Part shown: positions 21,274 through 36,200 of the stretch, piece by piece
Layout of the letters: the number at the start of each line of letters is the position of its first letter
Position numbering within the stretch: position 1 is the first letter of the stretch
Source of the DNA: Trichoplax adhaerens
Lineage: Eukaryota; Animalia; Placozoa
Length of the DNA: 64,000 bases
Assembly: GCF_000150275.1 (NCBI RefSeq)
Contig: NW_002060974.1
Span: forward strand, 93,744 to 157,743
Reading direction: 5' to 3'
Translations under genes and position numbers: made by a program
The notes under the pieces: generated by a model
What the model was told of the DNA's origin: nothing
Database searches by the model: none
The model's input: only the letters and a program-made list of their open reading frames with translations

Positions 21274-24200
21274 CTAGCGTTTTACACTTCTCTTTACTTG
21301 AATACTAACGCGCTTAGTATCATCGGGCCTTGCAAGTGGGGCCTGATTAGAATAATTTCTTGGACTTCTCGAAGGCGTTCCCTCATTGTAATTCCCTCTG
21401 GGTGAATTAACACTTGTTGTATCCTTCGATGGGTGTTTAGATCCTCTTCGCGATGCCTCACTGGTGGCAGTCGACTAATTTAAAAAGTATACAAGAATAA
21501 TAAGCAACCCATAAAATATAACTTTTATGTAATACGGTAAAAAAACGACAACTGTAATACGTTGCTATATTCTCATGTTATAATTACAAGTTTACATGTA
21601 TTGATGGTAAGTACGGAATTATTACTTACATGTGGCGATCGGTCATATCCAGTCGATTTATTTATGCTATAGTTAACGTTACGTGGCGAATTAAGCGCTT
21701 GCTGAGATGGTGGGTAATAGTTATTAGAAGAATAATCACCAGGGGGGTGCTTCTCGAACGAAAAATTTCGAGGTAGAGTCGAAGACTCGTAAGTATCATC
21801 AGAACGATTGTTTGTATTTGGTTTCATGGGTCCATAAGATGCAATTGGTGCCGCTTTAAAATTTCTTGGCAAAGTTGCTGATTCATACGAACTTCCTACA
21901 TTATAATTAGGTTGGTGGATAGATTGAGAACTAACCGAAGGTACCTTCGCTTGACTTCCAATTTGCCTATTTGGATGATTGTTTGGAGTCGGGGTATTAC
22001 TTGCGGCTTGCATTCCTTCTACACTTGGTCTTCGTACCGTATTGTCTCGCATAACTGGCTTTAGCCTACCCTTTTGTGACGGACCATAACTAGGAGATGA
22101 CGCGTTCGAAGACGGATGAGCGACGAGAGAACCATTATGAATAACTGCAGGTTGTGGTCTGTGAATAATCCTGCTACGTCTAGGGCTCTTTTCTCTATAC
22201 TGGCTTTGCTGAAAATGGATGGAAAATTGTTAGCGGAACGTTATTATATATTAAAATTAAAAAATGAAATAATCAATACTATTCATGTGATAGAAAATAG
22301 AATCATTTCATTACAACACAAAATAAATTCAATCAATACATTGCTTACTGAAGTATCACTTTCTAATAAATATTTTTCTAATTTCAATTCTTCTTCTTTA
22401 GGCATACTATTTATATCAGATGCAGAATCAGATCGATTGTAATCTCGGTAATTAAATGGTTTTAATGTAGTTTCATCATTGATATCTTTATTAGGATAAG
22501 TACTGTCAGATAAATCATTTGATTCCGTTACGCCAGGCGTCTGATTGACTGGTAGTACTCCCAGTTGTAAGTTATCAAATGTGGGTACGCGCTGTAAACC
22601 TGCGCTGTTATTCGGCGATTTGCTTTGAGGGTTGGATAAGTTAATTTCTTGACTAGGAGAGCTATTAAGAGAACCGCTACTTTCTGCTGTAGCGATTTCA
22701 AGTTGCAATCGTGTCGGTGAGAGACGTCGCGATTTCTCTCTATTTGGGCTAACCGGTCTTTCTCCAATACGATAATCACCGTTTCTAACCATCAGGTTAC
22801 TCTGATTTGGGTAACGTCGATCGCTATCATAATCTCTATCACTAACCACTCGCTCTTGATAAGGTTGAGGTCTAGTCCGTGGAGTAACTGATCTGCCGTG
22901 GGGTGTATTTTGTGTCGATGGGCGATGTGCATCCGATGATTTCTGCCGATAAGGTGACATTTCAGATTTCTTTTCATTTCGGTATGGCTTAAATGCACTT
23001 GAGGGAGATTTCGAGCGTTTAACAGGTGTTACCTGATCTTCATTTTGGTAACGATTAATCGATCGTGATCTTCTTCTTGGTGTTGGACTATTATTGCGAC
23101 TACCGCTCTTTGGCGTGCTTGGTGGTGTATTAGGCAACGATCTTGAACCGTTACGCCCATGACGATGTGGTCTTGGCGAAGATTCATCAGTACCTCCATC
23201 AGATTCTACATCAGTGGCAAATTCAGAAGCCTTATACTCACGTCTAGGCCTTCTAGGTCCATCTGTCATCTGACTTCCATCACTATCGTTGTTTTTACGT
23301 CCTTTTACAATGCTTTTCAATAATGTCCTAATTTTTCGATCCCATTTTTTACTAAATTGATAAAGAACAAGTAAATTAAGATTATAAGTCAGGCAAAGCC
23401 GAATGAAATACGTCAATTTTAAAATATCCTTCATATTTTTTTACTTTTTATCCAACTGAAATTGTTGTAATTTTTGCTCCAAATCTTCTTTATGACGATT
23501 GAGTTTGTCGATTGCTTCTCTATTAATGAATATATTCAGATGATTATGTTAAGATAATTTTTAGCAAGTACAACAACTATGCAAACTAAAATGTTATTGA
23601 AGTATACTGGCATGTAATTACATAAATTAAAATTATAGAACAACCCAATCGTTGGTGGTGAATAGGAAACTACAAGTACTGTATATTTTATACGGCATCA
23701 GAAGGCGTATTCCTTGGTATTTTGTAAACTTTCTACTCAACTTATTAAGAAGTTATTGTTATCTTGGCTATCAAGTTCAGATACTGACCACTACAAATAC
23801 CGTACTGCCTTCACTATAAAAGGCCGCATGTATTGCTACTGTAACTTCTATCAGTACAGCATTGAGACGATATACGCATTTGTCATGTCATAGTGCCTGC
23901 CACAGCATAAAAAACTGCTTAGATTATGATATTTATGGCAATGATGACGTTACAGTTATAATATTATCGGCTAAACTACAATTTAAGGGAAAGAACTTAC
24001 TTGTAGGTATGATGTTCTTCCATGTAAAGTTCTTTTCTATCTAAAGTTCTTTGCATTAATTTATGATTTCTCTCCATTAAAACTTTTTCATGTTGCTTTA
24101 GGTGTTTAATCTCTTCATAAGCGGTTAAACGTAGCTGTTCCAACATCTAAATGACAAATTTTAAACTTCAATAAAGATAATTAAAATATATTTATATAGT

Positions 24201-27200
24201 TACCTTTATAAAGACTGAATCTAAACTAATAATGAATGCTGTATTTCAGCTGACCTCGCATCGCTGTGCAACCTTGGCTGCTGTAATGTCTAAATTGTCG
24301 AAATCCTTTTTAAGTTTACCATAACTAGAATTTAAAGCATTATATTCATCTTCCAATTGCCTTATGGTATGAGCGTCAACTTTCGATTGCTCGTTAATAT
24401 AGTTGGTTTGCATTTGCTTTTTGGCAAATTCCAAGTTCAATTTAGCGCGGTCATACCGCTCTTCTAATTCGTGGCTGCTTTCTTTTAATCTTTCGTTGTG
24501 ACGCTTTAGATCATTATAACTAACTTGTAAGCTTTCATAATTTGCCTTGAGTTGTTTATAATTTTCGTTCAGTTGACGGTAGATGTCCTTTAAATGATTA
24601 TTTTCAGCGTATAACTCGCGATAATCAGTTTGCACATTCTCCTTTTCTTGCTTTATTCGAATAACGTCATCAGCAAGCTGCCTTTCTTTCAGCTGAATTG
24701 AATCATAAGAGTGTTGTAACTGCTGTTTCTCATTCTTAACGATCTCAAATTGCTGACGTAATTCATCAAAACTGGCTTTTAAGCGATCGTTTTGTTCATG
24801 TAACGTTTGGTGCTTTCCATTTAATACGTTGTGCTCGCTTTCCAATTTTTGAATCTATTAGGTAATTAGAGATGAATACTATTAAGGAATAGTATGTAAT
24901 TCGTGCTACCATATAATATTTTACTAATAAAATCTATTATAAAAATTAGAATTCTTTAAATGATATTTTGTTACCATAAATTTTAATGCAGCTATTCTTG
25001 CTTTAAATTCAACGTCTGCAATTTCTTCTGACATTTGTGAGCTACAGGCGCGTATAAACAACAGAATTTTTAAATTCATATTGCAGTGTTATGATGACAG
25101 TTGGAATAGAGATAAACTAGAAATAGTAAACTGCGAAGATTTGTAAAAATCTACAGTATATGTAAAATTCATCGATGGCATTTATTTTAAAGTTGGTCGA
25201 AGCAATATTTAGCTAGAAATCCGTAAATATACCATCACATGTTACACTACCTATTTAAAACAGATCCTGTTATAGCCATATTATCATGTACAGGTGTTAT
25301 TTCATTGGCGTCAATATCATCCTTCCATGAGTTTTTTTCCTAAGAATACGTGATTTGAAACGAATGAGACACAATGTACTGTATTACAGATTCCGAACAG
25401 ACAATTGTCAGTTAGTTTTTATAATGAAAGCTACAATATTATCAGTTAATTAAGTGACTACGAAGGGTGTGCATAGCCCAATATAAGAGGATAGTTAAAA
25501 ATTATAGTCGTAGATAGTCTTACTTCGGCTAACATCACATTTCTATCTTGTGCTCGTTCAAGGCTGAAAGATTTTGAGCATGAAAAAGTACGAAATTACA
25601 ATTTAAGGAAAAATATCTTATACTTATTATTTAAATTAAAAAAATACATTATTCTTCAACTCACGCAATTTCTAGCTGTGATAATAATTTACTTCTAATT
25701 TCTTTACTGCAGTTCAAAGAAATATCTAACTTCTCATCGATAGTTCGCGATTTTCTACATACGAAAAATTGAACAAAACATTATCAGTAATCTATTCATA
25801 AATATAACATATAATCAATCATCTCAAGCAGAATTAGTCTTACAGCTGATCAAAATTTGATTCTTGCTCCATTTCTTTTCTTATAAATTCTATGTCTTTT
25901 ATTTCTTTCGATAGCTTATCCATTTCTTTAATTAGCGTATGTAAACCCTTTCGATCGTTTATTAATTCCTAAGAAGGTAATTCAATAAACAGCAATTAGT
26001 TATTACGACAGCACTTACATAACCTTGAACAAATGTTGCATAAAATAGCGTTTGCAATTTATTAGGTTACCCGTCTAGCAGTAGACAACGTTGTCTTGTT
26101 AGTTATAATTTCGTCTCCGAAAGCGTTATCAAATTCTCCTTCAACCGTAGCTGTTTGCACCTGATCAATTGCTGGCTCGATATCATTAACAGCCATAACC
26201 ATAGCAGAAACTGCGGGATTAATTTGCTCATTAACTTGAACAGCTTGCATTTGTTGCTGTTTCGTTACATTATCAATTTCCTCGGATAACTGATCATTTT
26301 TATTTTGTAATATTTCAATTTCGTCCAGCAGATTCCGTTGCTTATTTACTAGATCATTGTTTTCATCCTTAATTGCTTGTAGCATCGTCAATTGTGCTTG
26401 CTGTTCTTTAATGATTTTATTTAAATCACCAACCTGGTTTTGTAACGCTAACAATTGCTGGCTGAATTCAGCGTTTTTCTTTTCTAAGTTAATATTATCT
26501 TTACTGGTTTTACTTAAATCATCAAGCTGATTTTGCAATTCTAACAACTGTTGATGTAATTCAGTATTTTTCTTTTCTAAGTCAATATTTTTTTCATCGG
26601 TTTTATTTAAATCATCAAGCTGATTTTGTATTTCTAACAACTGTCGACGTAATTCAGCATTTTTCTTCCCTAAGTCAATGTTTTCTCCATTGGCTTTATT
26701 TAAATCATCAAGCTGATTTTGTAATTCTAACAACTGCCGATGTAATTCAGCATTTTTCTTTTCTAAATCAGTATGATCTTCATTCGTTTTGTTTAAGTCA
26801 GTAACCTGATTTTGTAATTCTAATAACTGTCGACGTAGTTCAGCATTTTTCTTTTCTAAGTCAATATTCTTTTGACTTAATTCATCCACGCGCTGCATGA
26901 CCTTATCGTTATTCGATTGATTATCATTAGATTGACTGACTAATCTTGAGTTTTTAACATCCAATTCGATATTTGCCAATTTCAATTCTTCCAATGATAA
27001 CTGCAACGATGAGTTGTCCATTTTTAAATTATGATTAGACTTTTCGAGTTGCTGTAATGTTTTGCCCATTGAATTACATTCTTCAGTTAGTTTTTCGACC
27101 CTAAACTCAGCTTCTTTCAAATTGGTTGATGTTGATTTAATTTTTTTAGACAATTGATCGCTTTCATGGATTGCATCCTGCAATGCTGATTCTTTATTAA

Positions 27201-30200
27201 CCAAGTCTTGCTGTAAGAAAGTTTGATTTGTTTCCACGTCCTTAATTTTTCTTTCTAGTTCTTGCACATGACTATGATAATCGACTTCTTTACTACGCTG
27301 CTGGTCTAATTGATGCTCAATGTTTCCTTGACTTGCTTTCAATAAGCCGATTTCACGTTTCAATTCATCATTTTTTAATTGCAAATCAGTTACTTGAGCA
27401 GCTGCTTCATGATGTTTATCTTTCAGTGTTTGATTGTAACGGTCTACTTCGTTATGTGCTAACTGACTTTTATTAACAGTTTCATTTAACGTTATAATTT
27501 CACTTTCCAGCGTATTAATTTTAGCTACTAATTTATTATTCTTTTCCTCTAACTCGTGCAGCTCTTGCTGCCGGCGATTAATATCATTCTCAAAGTCTTG
27601 ATTAGTACGTTTGAGATGCTGATTTTCTTTCAATATTTGATGATTAGTCAATTGCAAGTTAGATAATTCATCAGCTAATTGGCTATGTTTTTGTCGTAAT
27701 GTATCAATATGTTGACTAGTTTCAAAGTGACTATGAATTTTACTTTGTAATTCATCCTCTAGCATTTCTTTCTTCATCGCTAAGTCTTGAGTACTGCGTT
27801 CCAATTCTTGCGTGCGAATTTCTAAATTAGCCATTTCAGCTTCTAACATTGTCTTTTTACCTTCTAGCTCCTTGATATTAGCTTTAAGGCTTGCAATATG
27901 ATCATGAGAATGATTTAATTTGGTTTTTGCATCATCTAATTCATTGCTGACATGTTGAAATTTTTTCTTCCAGTTATCACTTGCGGTTGTTAATTCAATA
28001 ATCGTGAAATCTTTTTTATTAATATCTTCATTACATTGATAGTATTGTGCTTGCAGGTCAATCAATTGATTTTTTAATCCCTTATTTTCATCCTGTAATT
28101 CATCATGATTTTCTTTTAAATTTTTCATGTTAAGTTCCAGCTCTTGTAATCCATTTTTACAACGTGAATAATCAATCACCTGCTGCTGTATACGGGACTG
28201 ACTGTCAGCTAATTCAGTTGTTAATTGATTATTCTTTAGTTTTAGTTTTGATAATTGATCATTTAAATCTTGTATAGTAATAGCTTGATGATCAATATCA
28301 TCGCTGTAGGCAGCATTTTTCGCTTCCAATTCTTTCATACTCTTATTCAATTCATGGTAATTATTTTCATTTGATTCCACATCAGATATTAGATTAGCAT
28401 TGTTCCTTTCCAATTCTTGTATCGTTTTCTTGCTGACTGCAGCCTCACGGGTTAAGCCATTATATCTCCCCTCTAATTCAGCTAATTGATTACAAACATC
28501 GTTATAACGCTTACGTAAGCTTTCTATTTGCGTTGAATCACTTAATGCCCCTTGTTGATTATTATTGCATTCATCACGCAATAACTTTAACTCAGCTTCT
28601 TGTTCAACGGCTGCTTTGCGTAATTCGTTATTCAATGACTCCAGTGCTTCATTTTCTTCGTCAAGGTTACCTTTTTTCTTCTCTAGTTCATCCAAGGAAT
28701 GCTTTAAATGCTTTGATTGTCTTAATACATCTTGATATTGTGCCTGAGTATTCATTAATTCTCGTTGGATTTCTTGATTTTTTGTTTTATAATTATCAAG
28801 TTGCTGCTGTTGATCTTCAACTATTGCTTCCTTAACACTTAAATCATCTTGAGCTGCAGCATTTTGACGTTGCCATTCTTTACTTTCCTTTTTAACAGTT
28901 TCTAACTGAGCAAGTAAATCAGTTAGATCTGCTTGCTGTCGGGTTTTTAAGCGATCCAATTCCTGATGTGTTTTGCGTAGATTCATCATGTCATGCGTCA
29001 ATTCTTGATTTTTACGCTGGAGTTCCTTGTAATCACCATAAATGTTATCATGTCTTTTTTTCCAGTAATCGGCTTGACGTTCACTATCCTGATCACTGGA
29101 TTGGCGTTGATTTAATTCATTCATCATTTCGACATGACGATTCTCTAGTTCAGTTTTAGCCGATTTTAAACTATCAATTAGTGTTTGTAAATCAGCTACT
29201 TCGGATTGAGAATTTGACGAACGCTTTTCCTCATCTTGCAATGCACGCTTTAATTGTGTTATTTCACGCTGCATATCTTGATTTTTACTTAATAATTCCG
29301 AGATATCTTGTGATGTACAAATCACCTTATCCTTTAATAATTGGATTTGTTTATGCAATTCGGTATTAGCCAGTTGTTTAGAGGCGATATCATCCGTTAA
29401 TAAGGCTATTTTCATATCTAATTCATTATTTTTCCTTTTTAATTCTTCTTGCGTTGCCTCGAGATCAGCATTATCCGATTTTACGTTATTAAATTGGATA
29501 CCCATATGATTATGTTCGCGCTTCAATTGTATATAATCTTGATTAACGGTTTCAATTTTGGCATGTAATTCACTTATTTTTTCTGTTGATTTATTTAATT
29601 TGTTTTGCAAGGTGTGTATCTGCTTGGTACTCTCTTGGATTGTAATATCTTTGTGGGTCAGTTCTTCCGATAGTGATGTTGCTTTACTTTCTAGTGATTT
29701 GACCGTTTTCTTGTATTCTTCCGCTGCATCTTCTAAGTTGGCTACTTCTGATCTTAGGCTATCATTTACTCGAACATAGTCTTCATGTTCTTGACGTGTA
29801 TGGGATAACTGATTCTCTAGTTCTTGAATACTGGTTTTCAATTCTTTCATTTCATTAATAGCAGCTAAATACTTCTTTTTGCTGCTATCGTTTTCACGTA
29901 GAGCCTCTTGTCTAGTAACTTCTTTCTTCGTTAATTCATCCAATAAGACAGAATTTTCAATACCTTGTCCTTTATTTGCCCTTTGTAATGTTGCTAGTTC
30001 TTGTTCTAATACATTTAATCGCTCGCTTGCTGTATTTTTACTATTTAATAATTCTTCATGATTGTCATTCAGTTGCTTGTATTCATTATTTAACTCCTGC
30101 TTCTTATATTTTAGTTCTAACGCTTCGTCACTTAACGTTGAGTACTTTTTCTTCCAATTATTTAGCTCATCACGAATTTGTTGATTATCGTCGTCACGGC

Positions 30201-33200
30201 TTTCTAATTGATTTTTTAATTCATTCACCTTCTTATTCAATCGTTCAACTTCCAATTTATTAAATTTATCTTCGTCACTACGAAGATTAGCAGTGAGTCT
30301 TTCGATTTCTTCGCTTTGTAAACTATTCTTCTTATTCAACTTGATATTTTGTCGATCTACTTCTTGATGTTTCTTCGTTAATTCATCTAATTTCTCCTTG
30401 CATTCATTTAGTTCCGCTAATACTTCTTGATATTGACGATTTTCTTTCGATAATTTAAGCCAATCAGCAGAACTATTGGTAGGATTGTTAAAGTTTTGGT
30501 TAGTTATATATTGCTATATGATCAGTGGAATACTTAAATAAATGATTCACTAATGTAACTGGAAGGCCTAAACAAAAATTACAAAGTAAATGAAGAATGT
30601 GATGCACCGAAATGCATCGTGTTTATCATTTCATACGTATTTGTTGCAAAATTCACATAAAAATCTTCGGTGATGATGCTAAATCATTTCGCATCGATTT
30701 AAATAAAAGTATAGTAAGGATAGATATCTAAATAAAGAAGTAAAATTACTGCACTACGGCTGTTGCAAACTGAAAATAATTTAAAAATTAAATGAACGTT
30801 GATCATTATGATTGTACTTTGCATCAACCACAGTACTCGCAACTCGACATAGATTTTCATTTAGTATTTGAAAATATTAGTGAAAGTAGTTAAATGAAAT
30901 TTCGTGAACAAGTGCTAAGATGAAAATAAATTATGTAATCGCTGAGAAGGTATCGTAATCTTCCAGAACTATATTTTTACATATGCACAGTCCTTAAGAA
31001 GTAATATAGTAATTGAAGGCTTACTTAACGTCAGGACATTCCTTAGCAATTGAAGGCATTGGACCTTATTAGATAATAGAATAGTTTAATGATAAGATTA
31101 TTTCAAAATACTAGAATAGAATTTGATGAAACTAATATTGGTAATGATAAAATATTTACTATTAGGTCGACCAAATTTCAATGTCATTATTTCTCCATTA
31201 GCTTCAGATAGTCGATCCTTACTATTAATTTGCAATCACAGATTAAAATTCTTTAAAATAATGAATTCTATGCTGTATAATTTATAGCGTAGAGCAAGGT
31301 ATCTTATGTATTCAGGCACACCAGGACAAACACCAAATTTAATAACACTCACCTCTTTTCATTTTCTACCTCAAGTTTTCCAATTTCTTCCATTAGATTA
31401 TGTATTGTATGCATATCCGTTTGCCTTTGCTAGTTTTGACAAGGGATTAAGATAAATAATTAATAAATATGTGACAGGATAGCGAGAATTCATTTGTGAA
31501 ATAATTCTATAAGGAGAGAAACAGTGTATTATTTGATTTACAACATAACGCCAGATATAGCGAAATAACTGATAACGATAATATTGTAAAATATTTATCT
31601 ATGGACTCCATTTAATAAATCATTGTAATTTTATATCATTAAAAAGTAAACAACTATTATATAAACCTGCTTATAAGACATACTAACCTAAAGATTTCAA
31701 TATCGTAAAAGAGAATGTAAAATATATTTTAAGTTACGATTACAGCTATTTTCTAACACTATATAATAAAACCTAGGGAGAAACACTGTAGAATTTTATA
31801 ATAAAGGCTAGAGATAAATAGTTCTTACTGGTCTGGTTTATAGTAAAAATTTTTGAAAGTTAGCAATTGGTAAGCTCTACTTAAAGGCAACTTTTAATGT
31901 TGTGAAATGATCTAAGACATACTATTATACCCATTACCTTTGACATGTCATCAACAAATTTGTTCAGTTCACGTATTTCTGCTTGTAATTCGTCTAATAC
32001 AGAATTGACAATAAAATGATCATGTATTTAGATCATACAATGAAGGTTTTATGACAGCTTGAATCTAAACTATAATTATAATTTTATTAATAGATTTTGT
32101 AATTAAGATTACCAATAAAAAATAACTAACCTACTGTTACAGAACTTTTATACTTATTTAATTCCTCTTCCAAAAATGTTTTGGATTCGATTAACAAAGT
32201 ATTTTGCTCCCTTAATTCCTATTTTCAAGTATAGTTATATGGTTTACAGAAAGCGTAAATAGATCACATTAGCACAAATTACTTTCAAATTAAAGACATT
32301 GTGATAATTTCATGAAGACTTTACCTCAACTTTTTTCTTATTTTTCTCAGAGTCCTTCAATTTTTCTCTTAGTTTAACATTTTCTGCCTTGTACTTTTCA
32401 GCTTTGAAAAGCTAGAAAACACAAATGAAGTAAGTAACAAAGAAAATGTGTTATCTAATTTTTAACATCTTAACTTATTAAATTTGATTTAATAGAAGAC
32501 AGCTTTTGAGAACGTCCTCGGCTACTATCATCGATTTATATCGATAGAAAGCATTTTACAGAGATGGACCTACCTGTTCTCTAAGAACATCATTTTCATC
32601 CCTATAGGCCCTAGCACTTTTTGCTTCACTGGAGAGATCTTTAGTCTATACGTACATATAATAGAATGATTAAAATGTAGAAAAATTAAAAAAAATTTCT
32701 TGATCTAGAAGGATTTTATACCGTTTGCTGAAGTTTCTTAATCAATTCAATCTGTCTCGCCAGCTTATCCTTGAAGTCATTAATTGATTCAGTTTTATCA
32801 GCTCTACAGCATTGTAAAAAAAAACAGATCTTAGCACGTAGATTTTACATTTATAATTTATGTTAATTGAGTGCTATTACGATATAATTTGTTATGCACT
32901 AACAGTTCATCTTTCAGCATTCGTATTGTTGTATTTCGTTCTAATTCTTGATAAATATCAGGTTCACTAGGTGGTCCATTGGTTGTCCCCGGCTGACCAG
33001 ATTCGGACGCATTTTGATTTTCCTCATTTTCCGTCTAAAAGTATCGTGTTGTAGACGAATTAATATGATAAGAGGAATCAATGATACCTTATTAGAAGCA
33101 TGATGAGATTAATAGTTATGTAGCGGTAACTAAAAAACCTTACCCGTTGACCTTTCAATTCTTCTATATCGTGTTCCAATTGAGCAGAATTCTGAGAGTA

Positions 33201-36200
33201 AAATAACGAGGAAAAAAATTATAATTTACAAAATAGAAACATTATAGTTCGTAAAATAGAAAACTGACAGACAATATTTAGAAGTACGTTATACGCACAC
33301 AGTATTTAGTTTAACAATTCTACTCATAATAAAAGTAATAATATACCTTAGCGAAGCTATCGCGTTGATCAGCGACTTCTTTTAAGTGTTGAGTCAGTGT
33401 CTGAACTAAATTTTTTAATTCCCTATCACCAAAATAACGAACATGTCATGTTAGAATGCTTTACTGCTTGGCTTTTAGTAAGCGTAATTATTTATTTGTA
33501 CTTTAGTCTACAATTTTAAAATTGACAAATTCAAAATTGTTAGCATATTTCGCTACTACGATAGCAGTAGTAATAAAAATTGTAAGGTCCTTATTTTATC
33601 TTATCTACTTACTCGTTTGATAAATTGCTGCTATCTTCAGTATTATATGGGACTGTTTTTTCAACGCTTTCAGTCATCTAATCATTATAGATAATGTAGC
33701 GATGAATTGATAAGTCAATTTAAAATCATAAGCTTGCAAGGTACCTTCTGCTTTATACTGTAACGCAATCGATTAAACAGTGTACAAAGGCATAAAAGTT
33801 ACTAACCTCTTGAATCAAAGGTACCAGCGCTTCCTGGACATCTACCGGTAACGTTTTTATCCTTTCTATCATTACTTCTTGTCGTTCAGACTAGAGAAAA
33901 GAAGAATCCATTGTCGATTTGCAAAATTAGTAAATTTTCCTAAATTAAAGTAATAGTACCATGCGATGACATTAATAATATCACTTATTACAATCATTAA
34001 TGATGTAAGAGAAATTATCGTGGATTTTATAGCACTGATAAATAATAATTCAGCAACGCACTATAGACCACATCAAAAATTCTGAGCTACCCCATAAACA
34101 TTTTTATACGTTGTACCTGCACAGCACACCCAAGTATGAGCATCAGTACTTTCTGTAATTCAATTTGACTTACATCTAAATAAAGGATTTAGCAAGCACA
34201 AAGACAGATGTTTACCCTAATTAGTATTAGCTAAGGTGTCCAAATAAGATATAGCTGAAGGTATAAATTGTTGGCATAAAAGCCGAGTGATGTTCTCCTT
34301 AATTAAACACATGCTATTGTAATCATCATAACTTATAATCATAACACAGAGTGTGTGATCTTACCGCTCTCAGGTTCGTAGCTAGCAGCGACAAAATTAG
34401 GTGGTTTCATTACGACTAACTGATGGAGAGCATCCTACATGAGCAGTAATTGAATGGAGGCACGTAAAGCATTTAGTATCATAGACGTAAGTGATCAAAC
34501 TTAATATTAGAAAATTGGAGTATATAATATTTAAGTTTTCTATGGTCTTTTCGCTGAAATTTTTTATAAGTATAATTGCTATCTCTATCAACATAATAAG
34601 CTAGTGATCAGGAGTAAAGCGTTAAGTATAGATTGTATATGGCACGCACAGTTTTGATCATTTTATGAATTAACATAGCGACTTTGCTGCATAACAATGT
34701 TTACATATCAAACTTAGAGGTCAGTAAATGACTATAGCTTACAAGGTTCTCAAGATTTAGCGTAAATGTGAGTCCTCTAATTAGTCTTACGTAATACTAA
34801 TTATTATACATGCTTTAGGATATAAAGCTATAAAGTGATACCAGTAAATAAGCCACTAATCGATTGCTTAAATTAGTTATAATTCATTTACAAGTTCACG
34901 GAGAGATACTCGCATTACTTACTGCTATAGCAAGAAAGAAAATTAAAAAAACATTCTAAATAGAATGTAAGTAACTTTCACATATTATCAGGATTTTTAT
35001 GCAAAATTGTAATTTATGATGGCGAAACAGCGCGATTTTATTTACATTAATAGAAGGATGAAGATATAGTATCATGGTAGTCTATAGTAGTTTTATCTCT
35101 TGTATCTCTATATTATAGTTGTTATGTATTGACCAGTCATGAAAAAAATTTCATATCGCAATGGCAAATGCACTGGATAGTACTGTAGATCTGCAAAATC
35201 ATAGACACGTTGTATGAATTACATCTATCATCAGTGAGAAAATCTTGGACTAAAGTTGATAGTGAAACCGATCAGCAATAGTTGGCATACTGTGTATATG
35301 ATAGTGCAGTGATTATGTACACATTGATTATCACGGCACGATTTCATAGGTTATATTGTGGCACTATGGTAGTCAATCGAGAAGCGTTTAGTTGACATAT
35401 TTCTATTTGGTCCATACAGTACTACCGTTTCAATTGTAGGAACGACACGTATTTTAATCATAGCTTAGGTATCGTTAAAAATGAGACAAAAGATAATTAA
35501 TTAGCAAGACGTGAGTAATGAAAGACGATTTATCATTGTTATTTTATTAAGATTTAATGGATACGCAAATAATAGGACTAACTGATTATTCATGTATTAG
35601 CTTTCGATACCCAAGAAGAACTTAAGATCAAACAAGATAGGAAATCTGCAGTACAACATTTACTACTTGCTGTACTATAGGTCATTTTACAACTTGATGA
35701 CTCGCCGATTATACTAAATTTTTTCTTAAAAACGACACTCATAGGATATATGCTTTCATATCTGAATCGACGTAGATTAGTTGAAATCTTATCTACATAT
35801 CTTATTAATTTAGAATAAAGCAAATAGACTGGATTTTAGGATGGTCTAATGTACCGTAACGCAAGTATGTTCCTTGTTAGTGAAAGAAAATAAAATGAAA
35901 TTTAATCTAAATTTTGTATTATTGATTAAAAATACAAAATTAAAATGAAGAAATAGCGAATGACATTTTGGAGTAGACAGCGTAGTACAATCTTGTTTAG
36001 AAGGAATGGACGTTTTTAAGGCTTTAAATCATTCATCGATTAATTATTTACAGTTAAGATGATTATGAGAGTATTTATAGAGCAACCAATAGGGTTGGAA
36101 AGATACAACATAATCATTTCATTTAAGTTCCATACCTGATAATAATTTTTAAGATTTTCGATTAGCAGTTCCAAATTTTGTTGTCTCTGTATACTATTAT

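Follow-up and report, generated by a model that had tools for sequence, protein, structure and literature searches.

An exact 13-heptad repeat of old origin in the coiled-coil rod encoded by a giant exon of Trichoplax adhaerens

Introduction

Long coiled coils tend to be regarded as plain spacers, and periods longer than the heptad are seldom sought in them. Does a rod of the HOOK/CCDC88 type carry periodic information, be it a ruler, a code for staggering or a series of docking sites, or is its unit length frozen by nothing more than the continuity of heptads? A clean natural case for this question lies on the minus strand of a 64,000-nucleotide stretch of DNA from the placozoan Trichoplax adhaerens (assembly GCF_000150275.1, contig NW_002060974.1, forward-strand positions 93,744 to 157,743; hereafter, the window), where one giant exon encodes a coiled-coil rod made of tandem 91-residue units. 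A preliminary description, made from the letters of the window and a list of its open reading frames, had read this rod as Girdin-like, with a 91-residue repeat arranged in blocks of four. We analyzed the extent, register, age and expression of the repeat, its possible relatives, and what a periodic rod surface might do.

An array of exact 91-residue units

The sole long open reading frame (ORF) at this site, 26062-30339 on the minus strand, encodes 1425 aa and lies within an open frame running from 30513 to 26065. Coordinates are those of the window, and residues are numbered along this ORF. It contains the following elements:

26866..30141, minus strand: array of 12 full tandem units of 91 aa (273 bp, 13 heptads each), ORF residues 67-1158, delimited by ungapped alignment, autocorrelation and profile scores
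30141, 29868, 29595, 29322, 29049, 28776, 28503, 28230, 27957, 27684, 27411 and 27138, minus strand: unit borders (high ends)
30142..30414, minus strand: degenerate unit 0, ORF residues -24 to 66, a hidden Markov model (HMM) domain in register at 2.1 bits

Autocorrelation of the first 1200 residues with BLOSUM62 scores placed lags 182, 91, 364, 273 and 455 at the top (0.57-0.69), with the next best lag, 154, at 0.27. Relative to 500 shuffles that preserved the composition at each heptad position, z was 9.8, 9.8, 6.8, 7.7, 6.6 and 5.3 at lags 91, 182, 273, 364, 455 and 546. The comparison with the heptad background, which the preliminary description had singled out as the check to make, gave 0.66 at lag 91 against a mean of 0.08 (standard deviation 0.10) and a maximum of 0.29 for the other multiples of 7, bearing out its claim. 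A sliding lag-91 signal sets in near residue 33 and ends near residue 1160. MAFFT aligned the 12 units into 91 columns with zero gaps at between-unit pairwise identities of 11-26 of 91 residues, and HMMER found 12 domains in exact register in the ORF (75-90 bits), the flanks giving no significant match. Each unit was also recognised at 27-56 bits by a profile built from the other 11. We conclude that the rod truly repeats every 91 residues, exactly and without insertion or deletion, and that the repeat is old.

The 13 short anchor motifs from which the repeat was originally proposed all lie at the residues given for them (62, 153 and onward to 1154); WKK is encoded at 30156, 29064 and 27972, and the (D/E)(D/E)(L/I)xxK segment associated with the anchors is present at unit columns 68-73. 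The periodicity of this 13-anchor array thus holds, but not its count: 12 units are full, and the one that ends at residue 62 is degenerate, unit likeness being left only in the last ~35 residues of unit 0, which end in WKKKY.

The same description had the rod grow by duplication of 4-unit (364-aa) blocks, with a super-period of 54 nm, on the strength of Trp at anchor residues 62, 426 and 790 in similar WKK(K/R) motifs. Three Trp among 13 anchors at a spacing of four carry a post-hoc chance of ~2%, any equal spacing one of ~13%, and the first Trp sits in the degenerate unit. Similarity between units showed no dependence on their distance; units at multiples of 4 were not more alike (permutation p = 0.35), nor were those at multiples of 2 (p = 0.42). 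The peaks expected at lags 91 and 364 do both rise above the heptad background, but lag 364 (0.66) only equals lag 91 (0.66), and lag 182 (0.73) tops both. On these grounds block duplication in fours appears highly improbable, and the 54-nm spacing falls with it.

Heptad register and unit anatomy

One heptad phase runs through all 91 columns and across every unit border, for 156 heptads and 1092 residues, in agreement with the unbroken register first proposed. Hydrophobicity has its Fourier peak at precisely 3.5 residues, the 26th harmonic of 91. Across the 156 heptads there are no stutters, stammers or skips, and the 1092 residues include zero Pro and 14 Gly. The arithmetic length of the rod (1092 residues x 0.1485 nm) is ~162 nm, as against the ~160 nm of the preliminary description.

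Leu occupies most d positions (in 6-10 of the 12 units), and columns 45 and 52 have it in 10 of 12; the d position at column 73 is Lys in 7 of 12. Polar a positions (Asn, Lys or His) recur at fixed columns 14, 35, 63 and 91. Surface residues at b, c, e, f and g are position-specific in 10-12 of 12 units; K/R recurs at column 25 (10 of 12), and Glu is kept at column 32. An acidic D/E-D/E-L motif fills columns 68-70 and a basic L-K-x-K cluster columns 87-90, with K/R in all 12 units at column 90. Net charge within the unit peaks twice, in a strong basic cluster at columns 86-91 and in a strong acidic zone at columns 40-51, half a unit away.

The unit profile also has a weak sub-period of 28 residues, of marginal significance (lags 28 and 63, z = 2.7), with polar a positions at columns 14, 35 and 56/63, and the 13-heptad unit may derive from shorter repeats.

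Units of this length could in principle be separate helical bundles or hairpins, as in spectrin, instead of segments of a continuous two-stranded rope. A single-chain AlphaFold2 model of units 1-3 lends this some colour, as its otherwise fully helical chain is interrupted at two Gly-containing sites (unit 1 columns 56-61 and unit 3 columns 32-39), giving three helices. The two sites are non-equivalent in the unit, however, and therefore describe no periodic hairpin; back-folding is to be expected when a dimeric rod is modelled as a single chain; and the lack of Pro, the 14 Gly among 1092 residues and the single phase across borders all speak for a continuous coil. We give the bundle interpretation hardly any credence. 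A two-copy complex prediction for units 1-3 scored 0.23, under the acceptance mark and with controls not run, and is evidence neither way.

Age of the array

Tandem Repeats Finder detected no 273-bp repeat at the DNA level. Third codon positions at lags of 273n had an identity of 0.33-0.36, compared with a background of 0.327, and residues identical between units used the same codon in 51.6% of cases versus 52.7% expected from codon usage. Synonymous sites are thus saturated, and the duplications are therefore old, with similarity held at the protein level only; the ancient duplications of the preliminary description are in keeping with both results. Because column-specific features have been kept despite this saturation, the pattern must have been maintained at the protein level in every unit. 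Constraint on the protein is also supported by the 17 exon positions that differ between the contigs of the sequencing runs and the window, 11 of them synonymous and 6 non-synonymous, where 36% synonymous would be expected (p = 0.017).

A second, younger repeat follows the array directly:

26415..26868, minus strand: tandem repeat of 93 bp (31 aa) in 4.9 copies; Tandem Repeats Finder, 83% matches, no indels, score 612

Its 31-residue unit consists of DLEKKNAELRRQLLELQNQ and a polar 8-residue linker. Since 31 residues are four heptads plus three, each copy shifts the heptad phase. RNA and DNA contigs all break within 26415-26868. The LEKxN motif of this repeat may resemble motifs of vertebrate Girdin, a likeness that serves as a lead.

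A single expressed exon and its origin

The whole array lies in one coding exon, flanked on both sides by spliced introns:

26071..30472, minus strand: single coding exon of 4402 bp with the entire array, from RNA joints and splice sites read directly
26071..26414, minus strand: non-repeated end of this exon, a last coiled-coil stretch followed by a hydrophobic and acidic segment, from translation and RNA joints
30473..31024, minus strand: intron upstream of the giant exon, 552 bp, from RNA joints
31063-31157, minus strand: intron further upstream, from RNA joints
31224-31354, minus strand: intron further upstream, from a loose contig end located at 31355
25968..26070, minus strand: intron directly downstream of the giant exon, from RNA joints
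25844-25967, minus strand: exon that receives the splice from the giant exon, from RNA joints
25755-25843, minus strand: intron further downstream, from RNA joints
25564-25664, minus strand: intron further downstream, from RNA joints
25339-25522, minus strand: intron further downstream, from a loose contig end located at 25338
24249..24854, minus strand: downstream coiled-coil open piece outside the array, 202 aa, with generic coiled-coil Pfam matches

Contigs of three runs, two recorded as RNA-Seq (X16 and X19) and one (X5) whose RNA label was guessed, connect 25967 with 26070/71 and 30472 with 31025 across minus-strand introns bounded by GT..AG. The 4402-bp exon is expressed and spliced as one piece. 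One RNA contig continues for over 4 kb beyond the giant exon on its downstream side, and the coiled-coil piece at 24249..24854, which scores 29 bits in total against the unit profile (best stretch 19.5), apparently belongs to the same gene.

A further run, X2, labelled 'RNA?', covers introns without joints, and its reads are evidently genomic DNA. Within the intron at 30473-31024, X2 contigs carry indels relative to the window at 30753 and 30970 (one also in X16), with 1 base missing and 13 inserted; run contigs carry none within the giant exon.

The array takes up 3276 of the 4402 bp of the exon, and 12 x 273 bp together with ~5 x 93 bp make up ~85% of it. The array would have arisen by tandem duplication of an intron-free 273-bp segment inside one exon, yielding the 12 full units and one decayed unit, and the units would then have drifted to ~20% identity and full synonymous saturation while keeping their unit-specific columns. 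Such intra-exon tandem amplification is a simple account of how a single giant exon came to stand in a gene of tiny exons, and the giant exon among tiny ones points to expansion within this lineage.

Search for relatives

A profile search of the T. adhaerens genome recovered the units at 82-97 bits each, and the next best place scored 29 bits. The 91-aa unit is unique to this exon in its genome. Against 1.84 billion representative proteins, the unit profile gave 1114 matches at E <= 0.001, the best reaching 86 bits over 7 stretches, where a single unit of the array scores ~90 bits. The 150 best of these matches were only generic, mostly bacterial-type coiled-coil proteins, and the window's own protein or a close relative was absent among the matches listed. 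In the seven matches that we scanned for domains, only generic coiled-coil, LRR_5, aBig_2, cohesin or other bacterial-type domains were found. The search with an HMM of the units that was suggested at the outset thus yielded many matches, the best of them at a generic coiled-coil level.

Word-indexed protein searches were blank for the repeat region, for the exon N-terminus that precedes the repeat (E <= 10) and for the downstream 202-aa exon (E <= 1), and such blanks mean little. A scan of metagenome loci retrieved no relative, and the ESM Atlas returned only unnamed or plectin-like coiled-coil clusters with low recognition. Our literature search for a 91-residue repeat or for Girdin periodicity produced nothing relevant, and we know of no description of a regular 12 x 91 array in the CCDC88 family. 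The repeat had escaped every family model and belongs with the long-period repeats already known from coiled-coil rods.

These searches bear on the view that the 91-residue period is an ordinary inherited trait of CCDC88 (Girdin/Daple) rods, hitherto undescribed. Nothing in the analysis spoke for that view, no CCDC88 orthologue having been retrieved. Under it, the purely generic character of the 150 best profile matches would be surprising, and an array confined to one intron-free 4.4-kb exon, in a gene otherwise made of tiny exons, is better fitted by lineage expansion. We consider inheritance from the family unlikely.

Repeat lengths in 92 strongly repetitive coiled-coil proteins among the matches were mostly multiples of 7 (14, 21, 28, 35, 42, 49, 63, 70, 84, 91, 98, 140, 189 and 196 residues). 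We rejected the idea that 91 is preferred as one supercoil turn, 91 and 98 not being enriched among the 92. Two matches, P0006 (~1090-1545) and P0084 (~330-694), themselves contain tandem coiled-coil repeats with a unit of exactly 91 residues, in 3-5 copies that are 40-55% identical, and P0015, P0026 and P0094 have 98-residue repeats that are up to 93% identical. P0084 also ends in a sortase-type motif, SPKTG.

Relation to the HOOK and CCDC88 families

Whether the gene belongs to the family to which the preliminary description assigned it was examined by Pfam and PDB searches run exon by exon. These drew attention to one upstream piece:

34090..34188, minus strand: upstream open piece containing an exon with LILGCAVQ, a motif of the N-terminal HOOK domain, from Pfam and PDB matches

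The sole Pfam match of this piece was to positions 102-122 of PF19047 HOOK_N (E = 0.0029, 17.8 bits, cut-off 23.5), and its sole PDB matches were to Hook1 (1wix) and Hook3 (5j8e/6b9h) at the equivalent position (E 0.5-1.4). The other candidate exon pieces had no meaningful Pfam match, a PDB search with a second piece was empty, and the window was not among the matches of PF19047 across the whole genome. PF05622 HOOK found no match in the 1452-aa exon translation at E <= 1, and a genome scan with this model identified contig C1408 only. At ~1070143-1073407 this contig has another gene, matched by HOOK_N at 30 bits and by HOOK at 27 bits, and we regard it as the probable canonical Hook orthologue of T. 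adhaerens. BLASTP between pieces of the window and pieces of that gene gave only noise.

The layout reported for Daple and Girdin comprises a HOOK domain, a coiled coil and an unstructured tail, and CCDC88 rods are reported as mediating self-association (bioRxiv 10.1101/2025.09.26.678488). The 1092 unbroken heptad residues, with the further coiled-coil exons, correspond to the long central coiled coil of the HOOK/CCDC88 layout, and Ser/Arg/Pro-rich open pieces at 23440-22286 and 22229-21576, which match no Pfam family, form a candidate unstructured tail. Between 12000 and 24300, no minus-strand stop codon is directly preceded by GC[VIL], YGCx or [ED]YGxx, as at the PDZ-binding end of Daple or Girdin-L, the true last exon not having been identified. 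From sequence, then, HOOK membership of the giant-exon gene has weak support, and CCDC88 membership is plausible.

At 23444-23548 on the minus strand we also noted a short coiled-coil piece, AIDKLNRHKEDLEQKLQQF, after which the Ser/Arg/Pro-rich tail opens with a basic stretch, KKWDRKIRTLLKSIVKGRK. The two may resemble the terminal part of the Girdin rod and the basic stretch by which Girdin binds lipids. Other likenesses to human Girdin, an IDKLN...LE.K pattern near the rod end and the LEKxN motifs mentioned above, are leads only.

Discussion

We propose that old tandem duplication produced a proline-free coiled coil, 156 heptads long, which probably presents a periodic surface on which rods associate in a staggered manner or a partner docks repeatedly. 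What the analysis shows is the array together with its age, register and expression. The rod would be a parallel in-register dimer on which an identical charged surface would recur every 13.5 nm. From 3.63 versus 3.5 residues per turn (PMC4786415), a supercoil turn works out at ~98 residues; 13.5 nm is near one such turn, so that successive units would face nearly the same way. Lying between a HOOK head and a tail, this surface may serve self-association with a half-unit stagger or the repeated docking of a partner.

Two observations bear directly on the surface. Column-specific surface charges that remain after synonymous saturation go beyond what the heptad constraint demands, and the charge pattern is suggestive of a preference for a half-unit stagger. 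The best charge complementarity was obtained at parallel staggers of 45-47 modulo 91 (mean z -4.7), half-unit staggers being favoured because the basic cluster and the acidic zone lie half a unit apart. When columns were permuted within heptad classes, in a post hoc comparison, the depth of this trough had p = 0.037 and its location p = 0.17.

Several points weigh against the proposal that the surface is functional. Its functional part is something that we infer; the charge result, besides being post hoc, is modest in both depth and location; and 91 residues amount to 0.93 of a supercoil turn, so that faces drift by ~25 degrees per unit. Repeats of heptad-multiple length, from 14 to 196 residues, are common in unrelated coiled coils, where 91 is not special. 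No orthologue was retrieved with which the conservation of the array, or its age in terms of species, could be compared, and the single-chain AlphaFold2 model breaks the helix at the two non-equivalent Gly-containing sites described above.

A possible, if somewhat doubtful, alternative is that the array is a relic that has no periodic function. A 273-bp segment would have been amplified because only heptad-multiple units stay in phase, and the similarity that remains would reflect dimer stability. The length would persist since indels other than multiples of seven residues break the rod and heptad-multiple indels are rare. The repeat lengths of the 92 repetitive coiled coils, mostly multiples of 7, agree with this, as do the modest charge statistics, and from general knowledge only ~1-3 heptad-compatible indels would be expected over the divergence, so that zero is not striking. 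The exact unit length accordingly needs little more than a ban on heptad breaks to explain it. A relic does less well with the b, c, e, f and g surface residues, kept in 10-12 of 12 units although synonymous sites are randomised, and the absence of any stutter, stammer or skip in 156 heptads is itself a strong constraint. It is the surface residues that incline us to the periodic, functional surface; selection for lateral packing or for a ruler, as the preliminary description suggested, may have played a part.

A more specific and rather unlikely extension of the functional reading is that a Girdin-like adaptor has turned into a periodic cytoskeletal element. Such a rod might assemble laterally with half-unit offsets (~6.8 nm) or bind one partner per 13.5 nm, and so act as a banded filament, or as a ruler between a microtubule- and dynein-binding head and a membrane- or actin-binding tail.

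The locus is of interest on either account. Three unusual traits come together in it: an unbroken run of 156 heptads, 12 units of exactly 13 heptads each, and position-specific surface charges still in place after synonymous saturation. Should the periodic surface prove functional, a family best known for signalling and for links to dynein or actin would gain a structural role; should it not, the array would be a tidy example of how coiled-coil physics constrains the evolution of repeats.

Comparison with known systems

The giant-exon gene resembles the CCDC88 proteins (Girdin/CCDC88A and Daple/CCDC88C) and Hook in having a candidate HOOK-type N-terminal piece and a very long coiled coil, and Ser/Arg/Pro-rich, domain-free pieces lie downstream of it. 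The searches described above gave no family sequence match, and neither a PF05622 match nor a GC[VIL] end was found here.

The proteins with 91-aa units (P0006 and P0084) and 98-aa units (P0015, P0026 and P0094) belong to the same length class, keep the same kind of register and likewise have no indels between copies. They are unrelated bacterial-type proteins with LRR_5, aBig_2 or cohesin domains, in which the repeats are young (40-93% identity), number 3-5 copies and contain non-heptad linkers. They match the unit profile at a merely generic coiled-coil level.

CCDC39 and CCDC40, the 96-nm ruler of the axoneme, are comparable as long rods whose length or internal period could set distances. 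For the rod described here, axonemal association would be speculative, and a ruler role is pure conjecture.

Myosin II and paramyosin share with the T. adhaerens rod a long two-stranded heptad structure that has a longer period, and alternating charge zones, which in the present rod may favour a half-period stagger. Their period is 28/196 with skip residues, whereas that of the T. adhaerens rod is 91 without skips and consists of true sequence repeats, not just of a charge pattern. Myosin II carries a motor domain, which has no counterpart here, and filament formation by the present rod is hypothetical.

Tropomyosin, with seven pseudo-repeats of ~39 residues that match actin subunits, has an unbroken coil with equivalent surfaces at a fixed axial spacing. 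The unit described here exceeds that length 2.3-fold and corresponds to no spacing that is obvious for actin or tubulin. Tropomyosin illustrates how a coiled coil could dock again and again along a periodic partner.

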